Shown here: positions 34,616-59,887 of the stretch, one piece after another | Numbering within the stretch: the stretch's first letter is position 1 | How the letters are laid out: the number at the start of each line of letters is the position of its first letter | Assembly: GCA_965112155.1 (NCBI GenBank) | Contig: OZ218101.1 | Direction: 5' to 3' (one strand) | Length of the DNA: 64,000 nucleotides | Origin: Podarcis liolepis | Lineage: Eukaryota | The notes under the pieces: generated by a model | What the model was told of the DNA's origin: nothing | The model's input: the letters and a program-made list of their open reading frames with translations, nothing else | Database searches by the model: none | Program-made: the position numbers and the translations under genes

Positions 34616-34751
34616 GATAAGGAGTATATTAGTGCACAAAACTGATTCAGAATTATTTTAGTAGTAGATAGGTAGCCGTGTTGGTCTGCCATAGTCAAAA
34701 TAAAAAAATTCCTTCCAGTAGCACCTTAAAGACCAACTAAGTTAGTTCTTG

Positions 34752-34789
34752 GTATGAGCTTTCGTGTGCATGCACACTTCTTCAGATAC
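34752..34789 (-). ncRNA. Minimal type I hammerhead ribozyme (inverted copy)
   Basis: Reverse complement reads GTAT-CTGAAGA-AGTGTGCATGCACAC-GAAAGCTC-ATAC. Confidence 0.85.
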
Positions 34790-34790
34790 G

Positions 34791-34832
34791 TGGTATCTGA
34801 AGAAGTGTGCATGCACACGAAAGCTCATACCA
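34791..34832 (+). ncRNA. Minimal type I hammerhead ribozyme
   Basis: TGGTAT-CTGAAGA-A-[GTGTG CATG CACAC]-GAAA-GC-TC-ATACCA. Stem I is TGGTAT/ATACCA; predicted cleavage after UC at 34826. Confidence 0.85.
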
Positions 34833-36677
34833 AGAACTAACTTAGTTGGTCTTTAAGGTGCTACTGGAAGGAATTTTTTTATTTAGAATTATTTTAGTTT
34901 TATACCACCAGCTTTATTTTAGTTTTGACTTATTTTTTAAGCTGCAGAACAAAACGTTGTTCTACACAACCAAGTGGGTATTCCTACATCTACTTTAAAA
35001 CACATTACTGAACACAAAATTGACAAGTAGCCTGTTCATTTTCCTCTTCTTAGACACAGTTTCTGATCAACATCTGTGGTGCTTTAAATGTAAAAATGGA
35101 GCATCTGTATCAGGTTGTATGTGGAAAAGGTCTATAAACTGTTAAATTGGCTAAGTTAGTAAATCAATTCTTTAGCGGGCTTGCCAAGTAGAGTTAACAC
35201 TGATTTATGCACCCTGGGGAGTACATAAAAGACTAGTCTCCTGGGACAATCCTTATATAAAAGAATTTACTAGGCTCACTAATTCATCTGCTATATTTTC
35301 CCCATCTTCGACTGTAGCATTGGGGCAGCGGCTACATTTTTCTAACAGATATATAAAAAGTCATTTTACCATAGTGGGATTTGGTTTTGTAGAACTGATT
35401 TGTACATTTGGGAGGCTGAGCTGTCTTGCAGAAATCTTCAGCTTCAGTTCAGGCTTTCAGTTCTGTAGTCCCTAACCACTGAAAACCACATAAATGTGAT
35501 TTTTCTATTTCTAATGCAGACTTTGGTATATAAAGCTGAAAATGGCCAGGGCTGAGATGTCTGAAGGACCACTTTCTCCTATATCAACCCACCTGCATGT
35601 TAAAATCATCTTCTGAAGCCAGCATCCAGGTGCATACATCTTTGGAAATTCAACAGGATTCTATAGGGAACAATGCTTTTTACCATGGAGCATGTTCTGT
35701 CAGGTACATTTAGTGATTTCTTTTTATTGAAATTATCATATGTACCATGGCCTTTGATTAAATGTAATTAAGGATCATTACTGAACATTACATTAAAGGT
35801 AATTATGGATCATTAGGACCCCCACCCCATAAACTTCTTTTCTGGTGGTAGAAGCTGATGTTTTAAAAGATGTTGGTATGTATTTCTAAGAGTCAATTAA
35901 AGCTATACTGTGTGCTTCTGTAAATAGAAATTTGAGGTATATAGTATCACAGTCATCATCAGAAGACAACAGACAACTGCACAGTATTAAATGTTAGTCC
36001 AAACCCAAGCCAGTGGGCTAGAGTTCTGTGGCCTCCCCCCCCCCCCAAGAGAAGGGTCAAATTATGCCTCAAAACAACATAAGGAGGACTGGGCCAAGAC
36101 ACAGGTGTGTCAGTTGCCTTCAAAGATGCTGTGAGGAAGGAACAGGGATGTACTTGTCCTAGTTCTACACAGGACTAAAGTGCACCCTGTTCTGGTCTGG
36201 CATGGGTATATGTGTTTTATGGGAAATCCACACAAATCCTGAAGAATAAAACCTAATGGAAAATACATATTTTACCATTAAACACACGTACACACATGTG
36301 GCAGTTCAACTTCCACTGCTAACAGTTGTACGAGGTACTTCCATCTTCTTTTGTAGTTTTAAAAAGCTTATTTTTTAATTTTAAAAACTGCAGAAGTGGC
36401 TAGCTAGCATTAGAACCTTCTGCTGCAGTTTCAAGTCCCCCTTGGAGAAAAGTATTTCCTTGTCTCCCTCCTCCCTACAGCTCCCTGTTCTTCTGTATGC
36501 CCTATGGTTTGAGAAGAGCCGTAGCTCAGTGACAATGTATTCAATACGGACCCATGGCCCATGACTTGGTATGAGCAGCTTCCTATGTTCCTGTATCCTC
36601 CTATCTTTTGCCACCTCAGGAAGGAGAAATGCTGGTGGCAGTCTGCATCCGGCTCTGCCAGCTGAACCCAAAGTTGC

Positions 36678-54880: not shown

Positions 54881-54998
54881 ACAATCCAATAATAATGAAT
54901 AAACAACAATTTTATTCACATGGAATTTCTGTGCCCTATCAGTGCATTATGCAGTATATTAAAACTGAATTTCTGCTCCAGAAACTTTGCACAATACA

Positions 54999-55342
54999 AA
55001 ATAAAAAAATTCCTTCCAGTAGCACCTTAAAGACCAACTAAGTTAGTTCTTGGCATGAGCTTTCGTGTGCATGCACACTTCTTCAGATACACTGAAACAG
55101 AAGTTGCCAGATCCTTCTGTATAGTGAGAAGGTGGGGAGGGGTATTACTCAGAAGGGTGGTGGGAATGGGAGATTGGCAGATAGCTGAGATGAGCCTGTT
55201 GACGACTCTTAACGACTGCAATAGGTCTTACAGGAAAAGGCAAGGGGTGAGAAGGTGAAAAATGGCTTAGTCATGTATAATGAGATAAGAATCCAATGTC
55301 TTTGTTCAGACCAGGTCTCTCCATGGTTTTAAGTTTGGTAAA
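54999..55342 (-). mobile_element. 5'-truncated Neptune-type PLE (ORF C-terminus + 3' terminal repeat)
   Basis: Terminal ~92 bp nearly identical to the 34.7-kb arms. The minus strand encodes TKLKTMERPGLNKDIGFLSHYT*, resembling the end of a PLE GIY-YIG ORF. 13-bp TSD TTTGCACAATACA at 54986-54998 and 55343-55355. Confidence 0.85.
55053..55090 (-). ncRNA. Minimal type I hammerhead ribozyme
   Basis: GTAT-CTGAAGA-AGTGTGCATGCACAC-GAAAGCTC-ATGC; stem I is retained via a G.U pair. Confidence 0.8.
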
Positions 55343-55381
55343 TTTGCACAATACAGTAACACACATTCACACAATATCCAG

Positions 55382-55383
<2 letters not shown>

Positions 55384-55432
<49 letters not shown>
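55384..55432. repeat. (AT)n microsatellite (left PLE flank)
   Basis: Pure dinucleotide run. Confidence 0.98.
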
Positions 55433-55435
<3 letters not shown>

Positions 55436-55480
55436 GGTTTTGGTGTCTTCGGGTGTCTTCCCGTGTAAGAGTTGGGGTGT

Positions 55481-55525
55481 CTAGGCGACGTTTCGACGAG
55501 GTCTCACTCGTCATCTTCAGGCTGG
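55481..55525 (-). ncRNA. Mirror copy of the minimal hammerhead-like motif (left arm)
   Basis: Reverse complement of 59706-59750. Confidence 0.7.
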
Positions 55526-55757
55526 TGCTTTCGGCTTCTTGTTACTGGAACAGAGCAGGATCTCAGTGTTTGAGTTCCTATAAATACTGTTGAGGGGGTG
55601 TGGTGTATAGCCTCCGACGTTCTGGGCAGAGAGGAAGTTCCCAGGTTAGTGTGCCTTTTCTTCTTTTGTTCCTTAATTACTTGAGGGATATCTTGAGTGA
55701 TTTCTTGAGTGATATTCTGAGTACCACTTAGGAGGGTCATTAAGTGTGGATTAGTTG

Positions 55758-57617
55758 CTAAAGCTTTCGTGTCTTGACCTCTTGAGCTTGTGAAGAGTTT
55801 TTCTGAGAAGATGGCTGTACTGCACTTAGTTGTGCTCTGGCTTGGCTTCGTGTATAGGGGCGAGCTGTGGTTTTGTGCCCTGTGCCAGCCAGATCTGTGT
55901 AGGGATTGCAGGGGGGTGCAGCATCCGGAGGTGCCACTATGGTTTGGCTACTGGATGGTGTCTGTAATTTATCTGTGGAGAGGGTCTGGGTTTGGGTCTG
56001 GTGTGGTTGATTGGTGATGGCGTTCTGTGTGCCTCTGGTTCTGGTGTCGGTTTTTGTGGGGAGGGCTAATTTCCAGATGTCTGGCAGGCGGGACGTGTCG
56101 TCACGCTTGTTCATGTTGTGAGGGTGTTTCTCTATCTCGATGGCTTCCATGATTATTCTCTTGTGGTGATGTTCCATGTTAAAGAGCAATTTGGAATCTG
56201 CAAAATTAATTTCGTGTCCTGTTTCTTTCATGTGTTGGAAAAGAGAGGAAGTTTTTTCTTCTTTTTTGACGGCATTCTTGTGTTCTGCGATACGTGCATT
56301 TATTCGTCTGTTTGTTTGTCCAATGTACGTGGCTGGGCAGACTTTGCAGGGTATTTCATAGACCCCTTGGTTTTCCAACTGGATTTTATCTTTGGGGTTT
56401 CTGAGGATATTGGCTATTTTTTGGTTGGTGCAAAAGGCTGTTTTGATATTGTGTTTATGGAGGATTTTGCTAATTTTATCTGTAGTGCCCTTGATATAAG
56501 GAAGGAGGGCCATGCCATTGTTTTCTTCTGTGTCTTGGTTTTTGGGGGGTGTTTCTTTTTGGATTAGCTTCGTAACCCTGTTTTGCTGGTATCCATTGGC
56601 GATTAACACATTTGAGAGATTCTGTAACTCAGTTGTCAAGTGGTCTTTGTCAGCCAGGCGTTTGGTTCTGGAGATGAGAGTCTTGGCTACGGAGTTTATT
56701 TGTGCAGGGTGGTGGTGTGATTGTGCATGTAAGTAGCGGTTGGTGTGTGTTTTTTTCCGGTAGATAGTGTGTCCTAGGGAGCCATCAGGTTTTTTGTAGA
56801 TTAGGACGTCAAGGAAGGGAAGTTGGTTGTTGGCTTCTATTTCCATAGTGAATTGTATTTTGGGGTGTAGGCTGTTGAGATGTGTGAGGAAGCTATCTAG
56901 TTTTTCTTTCCCGTGTGGCCAAATTACAAAGGTGTCGTCAACATATCTGAGCCAAAGTTTGGGTTTGTGTTCTGACTTGTCTAAAGCATTGGTTTCAAAG
57001 TGTTCCATGTACAAATTTGCGATGACCGGTGAGAGGGGTGATCCCATAGGTGCTCCTTCTATCTGTTTGTATCTTTGTCCATTGTGGATGAAGTACGTGT
57101 TGGTTAGGCAGTGGTTGGTCAGGTCCAGGATGTATTCGGGGGGATTGTATTTGTTTCGAATGGCTGTCAAGGCTTCATTAATGGGCACTTGTGTGAAGAG
57201 AGATACAACATCGAAGCTCACAAGTAGGTCATCGGGATGTAGGTTTTGCTTCTTTATTGTTTCTATGAACTGGAAGGAGTTAGTAACGTGTGAAGCGATG
57301 GATTCTGCATAGGGCTGAAGTTGCTTAGCGAGAAATTTAGCGAGATTTTGTAGAGGTGAGCCTATGGAGCTGACTATTGGTCTGAGTGGTGTTCCTTCTT
57401 TGTGTATCTTAGGGAGACCGTAGAGTTTGGGGCATCTGGATGATTTTTCTCTGGGGATGATTCTTAGCTGGATTTCTTCACTGATAGGAGAGGCTTTTAT
57501 TTTGGATTTGGTGGTTTTTTCCAGATAGGTGGTGGGATCTGTTTTTATAGGTTGGTAGGTAGGGTCTTGGAGTAGATTTGATAGTTTTGCTTGGTAGTCC
57601 GATGTGTTCATCACAAC
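55758..57617 (-). CDS. PLE reverse transcriptase + GIY-YIG endonuclease, left arm (N-terminally truncated)
   Basis: Same protein as the right arm except LAKQ vs LTKQ and NRV vs NMV. It extends a few codons further 5' (VVMNTSDY), with an in-frame ATG at 57611-57609. Confidence 0.95.
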   Translation of the reverse strand, partial: VVMNTSDYQAKLSNLLQDPTYQPIKTDPTTYLEKTTKSKIKASPISEEIQLRIIPREKSSRCPKLYGLPKIHKEGTPLRPIVSSIGSPLQNLAKFLAKQLQPYAESIASHVTNSFQFIETIKKQNLHPDDLLVSFDVVSLFTQVPINEALTAIRNKYNPPEYILDLTNHCLTNTYFIHNGQRYKQIEGAPMGSPLSPVIANLYMEHFETNALDKSEHKPKLWLRYVDDTFVIWPHGKEKLDSFLTHLNSLHPKIQFTMEIEANNQLPFLDVLIYKKPDGSLGHTIYRKKTHTNRYLHAQSHHHPAQINSVAKTLISRTKRLADKDHLTTELQNLSNVLIANGYQQNRVTKLIQKETPPKNQDTEENNGMALLPYIKGTTDKISKILHKHNIKTAFCTNQKIANILRNPKDKIQLENQGVYEIPCKVCPATYIGQTNRRINARIAEHKNAVKKEEKTSSLFQHMKETGHEINFADSKLLFNMEHHHKRIIMEAIEIEKHPHNMNKRDDTSRLPDIWKLALPTKTDTRTRGTQNAITNQPHQTQTQTLSTDKLQTPSSSQTIVAPPDAAPPCNPYTDLAGTGHKTTARPYTRSQARAQLSAVQPSSQKNSSQAQEVKTRKL

Positions 57618-57622
57618 ATCAC

Positions 57623-59473
57623 AACACATCGGACTACCAAGCAAAACTATCAAATCTACTCCAAGACCCTACCTACCAACCTATAAAAACAGATCCCACC
57701 ACCTATCTGGAAAAAACCACCAAATCCAAAATAAAAGCCTCTCCTATCAGTGAAGAAATCCAGCTAAGAATCATCCCCAGAGAAAAATCATCCAGATGCC
57801 CCAAACTCTACGGTCTCCCTAAGATACACAAAGAAGGAACACCACTCAGACCAATAGTCAGCTCCATAGGCTCACCTCTACAAAATCTCGCTAAATTTCT
57901 CACTAAGCAACTTCAGCCCTATGCAGAATCCATCGCTTCACACGTTACTAACTCCTTCCAGTTCATAGAAACAATAAAGAAGCAAAACCTACATCCCGAT
58001 GACCTACTTGTGAGCTTCGATGTTGTATCTCTCTTCACACAAGTGCCCATTAATGAAGCCTTGACAGCCATTCGAAACAAATACAATCCCCCCGAATACA
58101 TCCTGGACCTGACCAACCACTGCCTAACCAACACGTACTTCATCCACAATGGACAAAGATACAAACAGATAGAAGGAGCACCTATGGGATCACCCCTCTC
58201 ACCGGTCATCGCAAATTTGTACATGGAACACTTTGAAACCAATGCTTTAGACAAGTCAGAACACAAACCCAAACTTTGGCTCAGATATGTTGACGACACC
58301 TTTGTAATTTGGCCACACGGGAAAGAAAAACTAGATAGCTTCCTCACACATCTCAACAGCCTACACCCCAAAATACAATTCACTATGGAAATAGAAGCCA
58401 ACAACCAACTTCCCTTCCTTGACGTCCTAATCTACAAAAAACCTGATGGCTCCCTAGGACACACTATCTACCGGAAAAAAACACACACCAACCGCTACTT
58501 ACATGCACAATCACACCACCACCCTGCACAAATAAACTCCGTAGCCAAGACTCTCATCTCCAGAACCAAACGCCTGGCTGACAAAGACCACTTGACAACT
58601 GAGTTACAGAATCTCTCAAATGTGTTAATCGCCAATGGATACCAGCAAAACATGGTTACGAAGCTAATCCAAAAAGAAACACCCCCCAAAAACCAAGACA
58701 CAGAAGAAAACAATGGCATGGCCCTCCTTCCTTATATCAAGGGCACTACAGATAAAATTAGCAAAATCCTCCATAAACACAATATCAAAACAGCCTTTTG
58801 CACCAACCAAAAAATAGCCAATATCCTCAGAAACCCCAAAGATAAAATCCAGTTGGAAAACCAAGGGGTCTATGAAATACCCTGCAAAGTCTGCCCAGCC
58901 ACGTACATTGGACAAACAAACAGACGAATAAATGCACGTATCGCAGAACACAAGAATGCCGTCAAAAAAGAAGAAAAAACTTCCTCTCTTTTCCAACACA
59001 TGAAAGAAACAGGACACGAAATTAATTTTGCAGATTCCAAATTGCTCTTTAACATGGAACATCACCACAAGAGAATAATCATGGAAGCCATCGAGATAGA
59101 GAAACACCCTCACAACATGAACAAGCGTGACGACACGTCCCGCCTGCCAGACATCTGGAAATTAGCCCTCCCCACAAAAACCGACACCAGAACCAGAGGC
59201 ACACAGAACGCCATCACCAATCAACCACACCAGACCCAAACCCAGACCCTCTCCACAGATAAATTACAGACACCATCCAGTAGCCAAACCATAGTGGCAC
59301 CTCCGGATGCTGCACCCCCCTGCAATCCCTACACAGATCTGGCTGGCACAGGGCACAAAACCACAGCTCGCCCCTATACACGAAGCCAAGCCAGAGCACA
59401 ACTAAGTGCAGTACAGCCATCTTCTCAGAAAAACTCTTCACAAGCTCAAGAGGTCAAGACACGAAAGCTTTAG
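57623..59473 (+). CDS. PLE reverse transcriptase + GIY-YIG endonuclease, right arm (N-terminally truncated)
   Basis: Motifs YGLPKIHK, LRPIVS, LVSFDVVSLFT, GAPMGSPLSP, WLRYVDDTF, LPFLDV and YRKKT (RT), then GVYEIPC..C..YIGQT.R...R..EH (GIY-YIG). The frame is open to TAG at 59473. The ORF-track start at 57578 lies in the opposite arm and is artefactual. Confidence 0.95.
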   Translation, partial: NTSDYQAKLSNLLQDPTYQPIKTDPTTYLEKTTKSKIKASPISEEIQLRIIPREKSSRCPKLYGLPKIHKEGTPLRPIVSSIGSPLQNLAKFLTKQLQPYAESIASHVTNSFQFIETIKKQNLHPDDLLVSFDVVSLFTQVPINEALTAIRNKYNPPEYILDLTNHCLTNTYFIHNGQRYKQIEGAPMGSPLSPVIANLYMEHFETNALDKSEHKPKLWLRYVDDTFVIWPHGKEKLDSFLTHLNSLHPKIQFTMEIEANNQLPFLDVLIYKKPDGSLGHTIYRKKTHTNRYLHAQSHHHPAQINSVAKTLISRTKRLADKDHLTTELQNLSNVLIANGYQQNMVTKLIQKETPPKNQDTEENNGMALLPYIKGTTDKISKILHKHNIKTAFCTNQKIANILRNPKDKIQLENQGVYEIPCKVCPATYIGQTNRRINARIAEHKNAVKKEEKTSSLFQHMKETGHEINFADSKLLFNMEHHHKRIIMEAIEIEKHPHNMNKRDDTSRLPDIWKLALPTKTDTRTRGTQNAITNQPHQTQTQTLSTDKLQTPSSSQTIVAPPDAAPPCNPYTDLAGTGHKTTARPYTRSQARAQLSAVQPSSQKNSSQAQEVKTRKL

Positions 59474-59705
59474 CAACTAATCCACACTTAATGACCCTCC
59501 TAAGTGGTACTCAGAATATCACTCAAGAAATCACTCAAGATATCCCTCAAGTAATTAAGGAACAAAAGAAGAAAAGGCACACTAACCTGGGAACTTCCTC
59601 TCTGCCCAGAACGTCGGAGGCTATACACCACACCCCCTCAACAGTATTTATAGGAACTCAAACACTGAGATCCTGCTCTGTTCCAGTAACAAGAAGCCGA
59701 AAGCA

Positions 59706-59750
59706 CCAGCCTGAAGATGACGAGTGAGACCTCGTCGAAACGTCGCCTAG
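59706..59750 (+). ncRNA. Minimal hammerhead-ribozyme-like motif in the Poseidon-type PLE 3' terminus
   Basis: CTGAAGA-T-[GACGAG/TGAGAC/CTCGTC stem II]-GAAA-CG-TC. Core boxes are intact, but stem I is only about 2 bp (GC/GC). Confidence 0.7.
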
Positions 59751-59826
59751 ACACCCCAACTCTTACACGGGAAGACACCCGAAGACACCAAAACCTGCAT
59801 TCCTGTACCCGTGAAAATCTACGAAA

Positions 59827-59828
<2 letters not shown>

Positions 59829-59887
<59 letters not shown>
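59829..59887. repeat. (AT)n microsatellite (right PLE flank)
   Basis: Pure dinucleotide run. Confidence 0.98.

Follow-up and report, generated by a model that had tools for sequence, protein, structure and literature searches.

Within a 64,000-nt stretch of the Podarcis liolepis genome (contig OZ218101.1 of assembly GCA_965112155.1; hereafter the window) we analysed a near-perfect palindrome that lies between two (TA)n microsatellites and consists of two mirror-image, 5'-truncated copies of what is, by its sequence, a Penelope-like element (PLE). A repeat search of the whole window placed the arms of this inverted repeat at 55431-57608 and 57623-59800, with 2178 nt apiece and a gap of 14 nt between them. 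The features of the locus are listed below; RT stands for reverse transcriptase, and P0001 is an uncharacterised Podarcis muralis protein (LOC144326219), the closest protein that we found.

55384-55432, no strand: left (TA)24.5 microsatellite, 100% pure according to Tandem Repeats Finder (TRF), with unique flank upstream.
55431-57617, minus strand: left PLE copy, 5'-truncated and tail-less, its inner end taking in nine apparently templated spacer nucleotides (arm alignment).
57618-57622, no strand: 5-nt filler ATCAC at the centre, explained by neither copy (direct reading).
57623-59828, plus strand: tailed right PLE copy, its 5' truncation falling at the codon for N85 of P0001 (arm alignment, protein comparison).
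59801-59828, plus strand: 28-nt 3' tail, on the right copy only; length and one-sidedness as in the published PLE tail (PMC8557442, PMC11167929).
59829-59887, no strand: right (AT)29.5 microsatellite, 100% pure (TRF).
57623-59473, plus strand: right open frame of 616 codons plus stop, with RT at about 57824-58360 and GIY-YIG at about 58865-58984 (open reading frame, Pfam).
55758-57608, minus strand: left mirror open frame of 616 codons plus stop, with RT at about 56871-57407 and GIY-YIG at about 56247-56366 (reading of the open reading frame).
59711-59744, plus strand: putative minimal hammerhead motif overlapping the ATG at 59717 (motif scan; helix II in the fold).
55487-55520, minus strand: mirror putative minimal hammerhead motif of the left copy (motif scan).
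57902, plus strand: arm difference paired with 57329; right ACT (Thr), left GCT (Ala, as in relatives), a CpG-type change (alignment).
58653, plus strand: arm difference paired with 56578; right ATG (Met), left AGG (Arg, as in relatives) (alignment).

An exhaustive base-by-base comparison of the arms gave exactly two mismatches over the 2178 sites (0.09%), a C at 56578 against 58653 (A in the reverse complement) and a C at 57329 against 57902 (T in the reverse complement). An inverted repeat of 2.2 kb at 99.9% identity is far above chance level. The initial annotation, made from the letters alone, had described arms of this length joined 5'-to-5' across a 14-bp spacer, each with an uninterrupted RT and GIY-YIG frame of about 615 codons, had named these two differences and had identified the frames as Penelope-like; the repeat search, the arm alignment and the domain matches described below confirm all of this, with no further differences between the arms. 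Two details have to be adjusted: the spacer is indeed 14 nt long, but nine of its bases seem to belong to the left copy, and the span, given as 55431-59830, holds for the arms but has its right end at 59828, after the 28 nt by which the right copy extends further at its 3' end than the left. The microsatellites on both sides are pure but unequal in length, and outside them each side has its own unique DNA, with no mirroring. Both GC and AT skews change sign at the centre of the palindrome, as would be expected where two opposed copies of a strand-biased coding sequence meet.

In the frame of the arms, Pfam returned an RVT_1 match above its cut-off (E 1.3e-15), and a protein search returned thousands of homologues that share the same RT and PLE-associated Pfam families, in keeping with an RT of the PLE/telomerase-like type. 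The GIY-YIG match (E 7e-4, 20.2 bits) stays under the Pfam cut-off of 22.6, so the endonuclease assignment rests on homologues and on the motif GVYEIPCKVCPATYIGQT, which contains the two internal Cys typical of PLE endonucleases and is followed by His residues (CCHH). No CX2-5CxxC linker, the mark of Neptune and Nematis elements, was found upstream of GIY-YIG in the translated frame. With these predicted domains, we assign the arms to a PLE of the Penelope/Poseidon type, in which the RT is followed by a C-terminal GIY-YIG endonuclease. P0001 is 97% identical over 608 aa and aligns from its residue 85, and relatives from viperid and crotalid snakes reach 82-88% identity (Vipera latastei 82%; Crotalus tigris 88% over the N-terminal part). 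At 45-65% identity, family relatives include many from beetles and other insects (protein level, 57623-59470).

In complete relatives, such as an Anolis protein of 836 aa, the arm start is preceded by about 265-290 residues; roughly 270-290 N-terminal codons, or about 0.85 kb of the element's 5' part, are missing from each arm. Both copies are non-autonomous because the 5' part of the open reading frame (ORF) is missing, and the insertion was dead on arrival, with no functional element left. About 12 codons before the stop, both arms depart from the frame kept by P0001 and the relative P0019, and the relatives' C-terminal sequence is still legible in another frame of both arms; since this departure is common to both, the arms come from the same template. 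Direct pseudo-long terminal repeats (pseudo-LTRs) are absent: the terminal region is not repeated in direct orientation, and the family has no further copy in the window. Pseudo-LTRs belong to full-length insertions and are not expected in a 5'-truncated one.

The outer ends also resemble those of PLEs. Within the last 120 nt of each copy there is a motif with, in order, CUGAAGA, one bulged U (standing after position 9 of the hammerhead core), a 6-bp helix II with a G10.1-C11.1 pair, GAAA, CGUC and palindromic positions 15.2-16.2, which matches the feature list of minimal hammerhead ribozymes (HHRs) of PLEs (Cervera and de la Pena, PMC4209133). A motif scan of the 64 kb gave five such minimal motifs, all at PLE ends. 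Rfam returned no hammerhead family, at gathering or at E-value thresholds, even with the 191-nt terminal region as query; the terminal motif is a candidate minimal HHR.

The arrangement around this motif can be compared with that of PAc, a Poseidon-type PLE of Anolis carolinensis whose ORF begins in HHR stem II, with a cut 26 nt downstream (Frangieh et al. 2024, PMC11167929). Here, the ATG at 59717 likewise stands at the start of helix II, and the predicted cut falls about 25 nt past the start codon. In PAc, reverse transcription has two neighbouring internal start sites, in and beside an AC-rich stem-loop 111-118 nt into the ORF, and the genomic "tail" is the stretch between them (PMC11167929). 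The 3' ends in the palindrome likewise fall at two discrete sites, about 28 nt apart: the end of the left copy, ambiguous within GCAT, lies 84 nt past the ATG, and that of the right copy lies 112 nt past it, beside an AC-rich stem-loop; in the predicted fold of the terminal region, the inner end lies within the AC-rich loop, which is closed by CACGGG/CCCGUG. Because the end positions and the AC-rich loop match those reported for PAc, the asymmetry of the arms is best read as the known PLE tail and not as damage. The AT-rich target is a further likeness. The present element belongs to a different family from PAc (the best Anolis match is only 46% identical), and the PAc paper reports no fold-back products (PMC11167929).

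The centre of the palindrome holds the details that bear most on its origin. The spacer, CATCACAACATCAC, occupies 57609-57622 and reads GTGAT GTT GTG ATG on the minus strand, followed by AAC ACA TCG of the left arm. Positions 57609-57617 (GTTGTGATG on the minus strand) encode Val-Val-Met, equal to residues 82-84 of P0001, which precede NTSDYQ; a chance match of these three residues at the codon level would be expected about once in 16,000. Because the spacer codons continue the P0001 sequence, the left copy would be 9 nt longer at its 5' end than the right. On the plus strand, the centre shows an 8-nt tandem duplication, C ATCACAAC ATCACAAC ACATCGG, and there is neither (TA)n nor host sequence between the two 5' ends. 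A search with the junction peptide, by way of the ORF that crosses the centre, gave no near-identical protein, the best match (88%, Crotalus tigris) lying outside the junction residues.

The initial annotation had noted that both arms are truncated at almost the same base, and an offset of 9 nt is what we observe; two independent truncations would fall this close along a unit of about 3 kb with a chance of about 0.6%. The window contains a second PLE palindrome, from another family, with arms of 95 nt at 34695-34789 and 34793-34887 that differ at one site and are 3 nt apart; it has a hammerhead core on each strand and, only on its left, a tail of 34 nt. On either side of it stands a copy of the 14-bp sequence AGAATTATTTTAGT (34649-34662 and 34885-34898), repeated in the same direction without mismatch, and since one target-site duplication (TSD) surrounds the whole palindrome, it was inserted in one event. 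A solo copy of this second family (54998-55342, minus strand, 345 bp, hammerhead core at 55086) is 5'-truncated and tail-less and is flanked by a 12-bp TSD, TTTGCACAATAC (54986-55354), which demonstrates that the tail-less end can be used by itself. Only about 30 bp separate this solo copy from the (TA)n into which the large palindrome went.

Taken together, the private features shared by the arms, the absence of (TA)n between the 5' ends, the element-defined outer ends and the smaller, TSD-flanked palindrome point to a single event, and a recent single-event origin fits all internal evidence. The same observations leave little room for a two-step origin, by two opposite insertions into the same microsatellite or by later fold-back replication, at a DNA break, of a single truncated copy. 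Such a history has some precedent, as (TA)n is a preferred PLE target in which repeated hits could occur and palindromes are known to form at the DNA level during gene amplification; here, however, no target or host DNA separates the 5' ends, the truncations coincide within 9 nt, the arms share private features and differ at only two of 2178 sites, and the outer ends fall on two expected sites of the element, whereas a DNA-level fold-back would have duplicated flanking sequence as well. We therefore regard it as very improbable. An assembly artefact, from a chimeric fold-back long read or a mis-join, is about equally hard to credit: palindromic artefacts do exist in long-read data and inverted PLE structures trouble assemblies, but a chimeric read would stop the arms at an arbitrary point with mirrored flanks, and the arms here end at element termini. 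The one-sided tail, the (TA)n runs of 24.5 and 29.5 units, the unique outer flanks, the two arm differences and the TSD-flanked palindrome of another PLE family in the same window also speak against an artefact.

We propose that a recently active PLE inserted into the (TA)n microsatellite in one retrotransposition event and that a fold-back during this event probably gave rise to the two mirror-image, 5'-truncated copies, a view that we hold with moderate confidence. Target-primed reverse transcription would begin at the cleaved (TA)n. Some 2.2 kb further on, the 3' end of the cDNA would leave the RNA and pair with itself a few bases back, possibly through a microhomology of the terminal AAC with GTT 6 nt upstream, and the folded cDNA would then be extended outward along itself, giving two arms truncated at the same place. 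The 8-nt tandem duplication could reflect slippage at the fold-back step. Self-priming of this kind has been inferred from head-to-head junctions of Penelope copies in rotifers (Arkhipova et al. 2013, PMC3846280).

The one-sided 28-nt tail may be explained if PLE reverse transcription can start or stop at either of two sites, and its simplest source would be a second target strand that was likewise cleaved and primed, as PAc does in vitro. Three routes can be envisaged. The other target strand might have been primed at the outer site, the folded-back strand then annealing to that short cDNA; or the tailed arm might have been made first, its copy having halted at the inner site, and the spacer might afterwards have been flipped by an exchange between arms; or the left arm might have lost 28 nt between two GCAT repeats. 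Two further schemes were rejected: a right-arm-first fold-back without a later flip, as the templated loop bases continue the left copy, and an RNA template from a palindromic master copy, as the left end would then miss an RT start site.

The initial annotation had left the choice between a single fold-back and a double-primed integration, probably recent. The single recent event agrees with the internal evidence; of the two routes, the anatomy of the spacer favours fold-back, while the tail requires a second priming or stopping site. In a double-primed insertion without fold-back, each cleaved target strand would prime a cDNA of its own on a separate RNA, for example in a dimeric ribonucleoprotein; the two cDNAs would stop at nearly the same place and be joined when their 3' ends, paired by microhomology, prime each other. 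PAc cleaves and extends both target strands in vitro and is predicted to form a dimer (PMC11167929), and priming on both strands would explain inverted products. The tailed and tail-less outer ends would follow naturally from this scheme, the two arm differences could stem from two templates, and a 9-nt offset with a 5-nt filler is what end joining would be expected to leave, so that the junction fits equally well. Against it, the two ends would have come within 9 nt of each other only by the small chance given above, unless the two RTs moved in lockstep or the RNAs shared a 5' end, and the second palindrome in the window is symmetric too, which argues that one arm was copied from the other. 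We consider this route unlikely.

Several points weigh against a fold-back as we propose it. A pure fold-back copy cannot hold a tail that is absent from its template, so that an extra step is required, and the order in which the arms were made cannot be fixed, as any recombination between them would invert the spacer. The support for the nine bases that we read as templated is at the codon level only. The TSD of the large palindrome is unreadable, the target being (TA)n, and the physical continuity of the locus is that given by the assembly. As to the element itself, the GIY-YIG score is below the curated Pfam cut-off and Rfam does not recognise the hammerhead.

The sequence of the arms also indicates the age of the structure. 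Each of the two arm differences changes the amino acid, and in both cases the derived state (Ala to Thr at the CpG; Arg to Met) is in the right copy, the left copy retaining the state of P0001 and P0019 at both sites. This distribution fits copying errors in the second arm; alternatively, two later mutations would both have fallen in the right arm with a chance of one in four. The observed/expected ratio of CpG is 0.52 in the element vs 0.25 in the surrounding 9.5 kb, a contrast that agrees with the element having recently reached a methylated genome depleted of CpG; of about 100 CpGs in the two arms, only one differs. If we assume a rate of 1-2 x 10^-9 substitutions per site per year, the divergence of the arms corresponds to a few hundred thousand years at most, although gene conversion could mask a greater age. 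The insertion is young.

In L1 twin priming, said to go back to Ostertag and Kazazian (2001), a second priming during target-primed reverse transcription reportedly inverts part of a single insertion, so that the 5' part of one copy is inverted and no sequence is duplicated. The palindrome differs from such products in that the same 2.2 kb is present twice, in mirror image. Closer parallels are found within PLEs, where inverted 5'-truncated copies, a one-sided tail of 30-40 bp and (TA)n or AT-rich targets are hallmarks (PMC8557442, PMC3846280, PMC11167929). With the complex tandem and inverted insertions of endonuclease-containing (EN+) PLEs (Evgen'ev & Arkhipova 2005; Arkhipova 2006; PMC3846280; PMC8557442), the present structure has in common the 5' truncation, the head-to-head inverted copy, a small asymmetric or palindromic junction, the tail at one end only (30-40 bp in those insertions), a putative hammerhead within the terminal repeat and the AT-rich or (TA)n target. 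In their textbook form, these insertions have a full or tandem unit with a short inverted copy upstream of it; here, in contrast, there is no full-length unit and no direct pseudo-LTR, and two equal arms, each about 70% of the element, form a near-perfect palindrome of 4.4 kb.

Every component of the structure has thus already been published for PLEs, and what is unusual is its form, with equal arms, near-identity and no full-length unit between or beside them. The palindrome is real, recent and unusually clean, and it is a useful specimen for studying PLE integration, even if it will not surprise the specialist. PLE integration is poorly understood, and its only biochemical study (PAc, 2024) left the genomic inverted copies unexplained. 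A young, long palindrome keeps details of the junction that older copies lose, here an intact centre, one tailed and one tail-less end, and a TSD-flanked sibling nearby, and a set of such loci could tell fold-back from double priming.

It is possible, though on balance doubtful, that currently active PLE families of this lizard regularly, and perhaps commonly, give rise to symmetric fold-back palindromes. In that case, the junctions of these palindromes, with a loop templated from one arm, a filler and exactly one tailed end, would record self-priming and two-strand priming in vivo, and the genome would also tolerate many near-perfect palindromes of several kilobases that are able to feed long double-stranded RNA into silencing pathways. 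With regard to genome stability, such palindromes are candidate fragile sites.

Loci that produce hairpin RNA, a source of endogenous small interfering RNAs, from inverted transposon copies occur in flies and in mouse oocytes. The palindrome resembles them in that two long, nearly identical inverted transposon copies are separated by a short loop, and it differs from them in showing no conservation or sign of selection. As the initial annotation had suggested, it could itself be a hairpin-RNA gene, whose read-through transcript would give small RNAs that silence the family, and this would be compatible with any of the origins discussed above; the extrusion of the DNA as a cruciform, raised in the same annotation, is likewise hypothetical. 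The central 600 nt of a transcript from either strand are predicted to fold at -572 kcal/mol with 97% of bases paired, and the gene model of P0001 joins an exon from the antisense strand to the sense ORF, so that a head-to-head pair elsewhere has been modelled as one transcript. On the other hand, we found no recognisable host exon or promoter nearby, and none of the ten other long ORFs of the window matched a Pfam family; the terminal repeats point outward, so that an element promoter, if any, would not transcribe the arms; and nothing suggests selection, both arm differences being non-synonymous and the structure simply young. A role as a hairpin-RNA gene therefore appears quite unlikely to us.

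On a practical matter, loci of this kind can yield misleading gene models and miRNA-like hairpin matches in genome annotation. Rfam returned no match at gathering thresholds in the whole window; with E-value thresholds, the centre (57476-57756) matched several miRNA precursor models from plants and animals, none of which reached its gathering score, and such matches are an artefact of any perfect hairpin. P0001 itself illustrates the first problem. Its first 37 residues map antisense on the element, at 57007-57117 on the plus strand (97% identical, ending at GT) and, in mirror image, at 58114-58224 on the minus strand. Because these residues are antisense-encoded, the P0001 model appears to sit on another head-to-head PLE pair, and LOC144326219 is probably not a real host gene.

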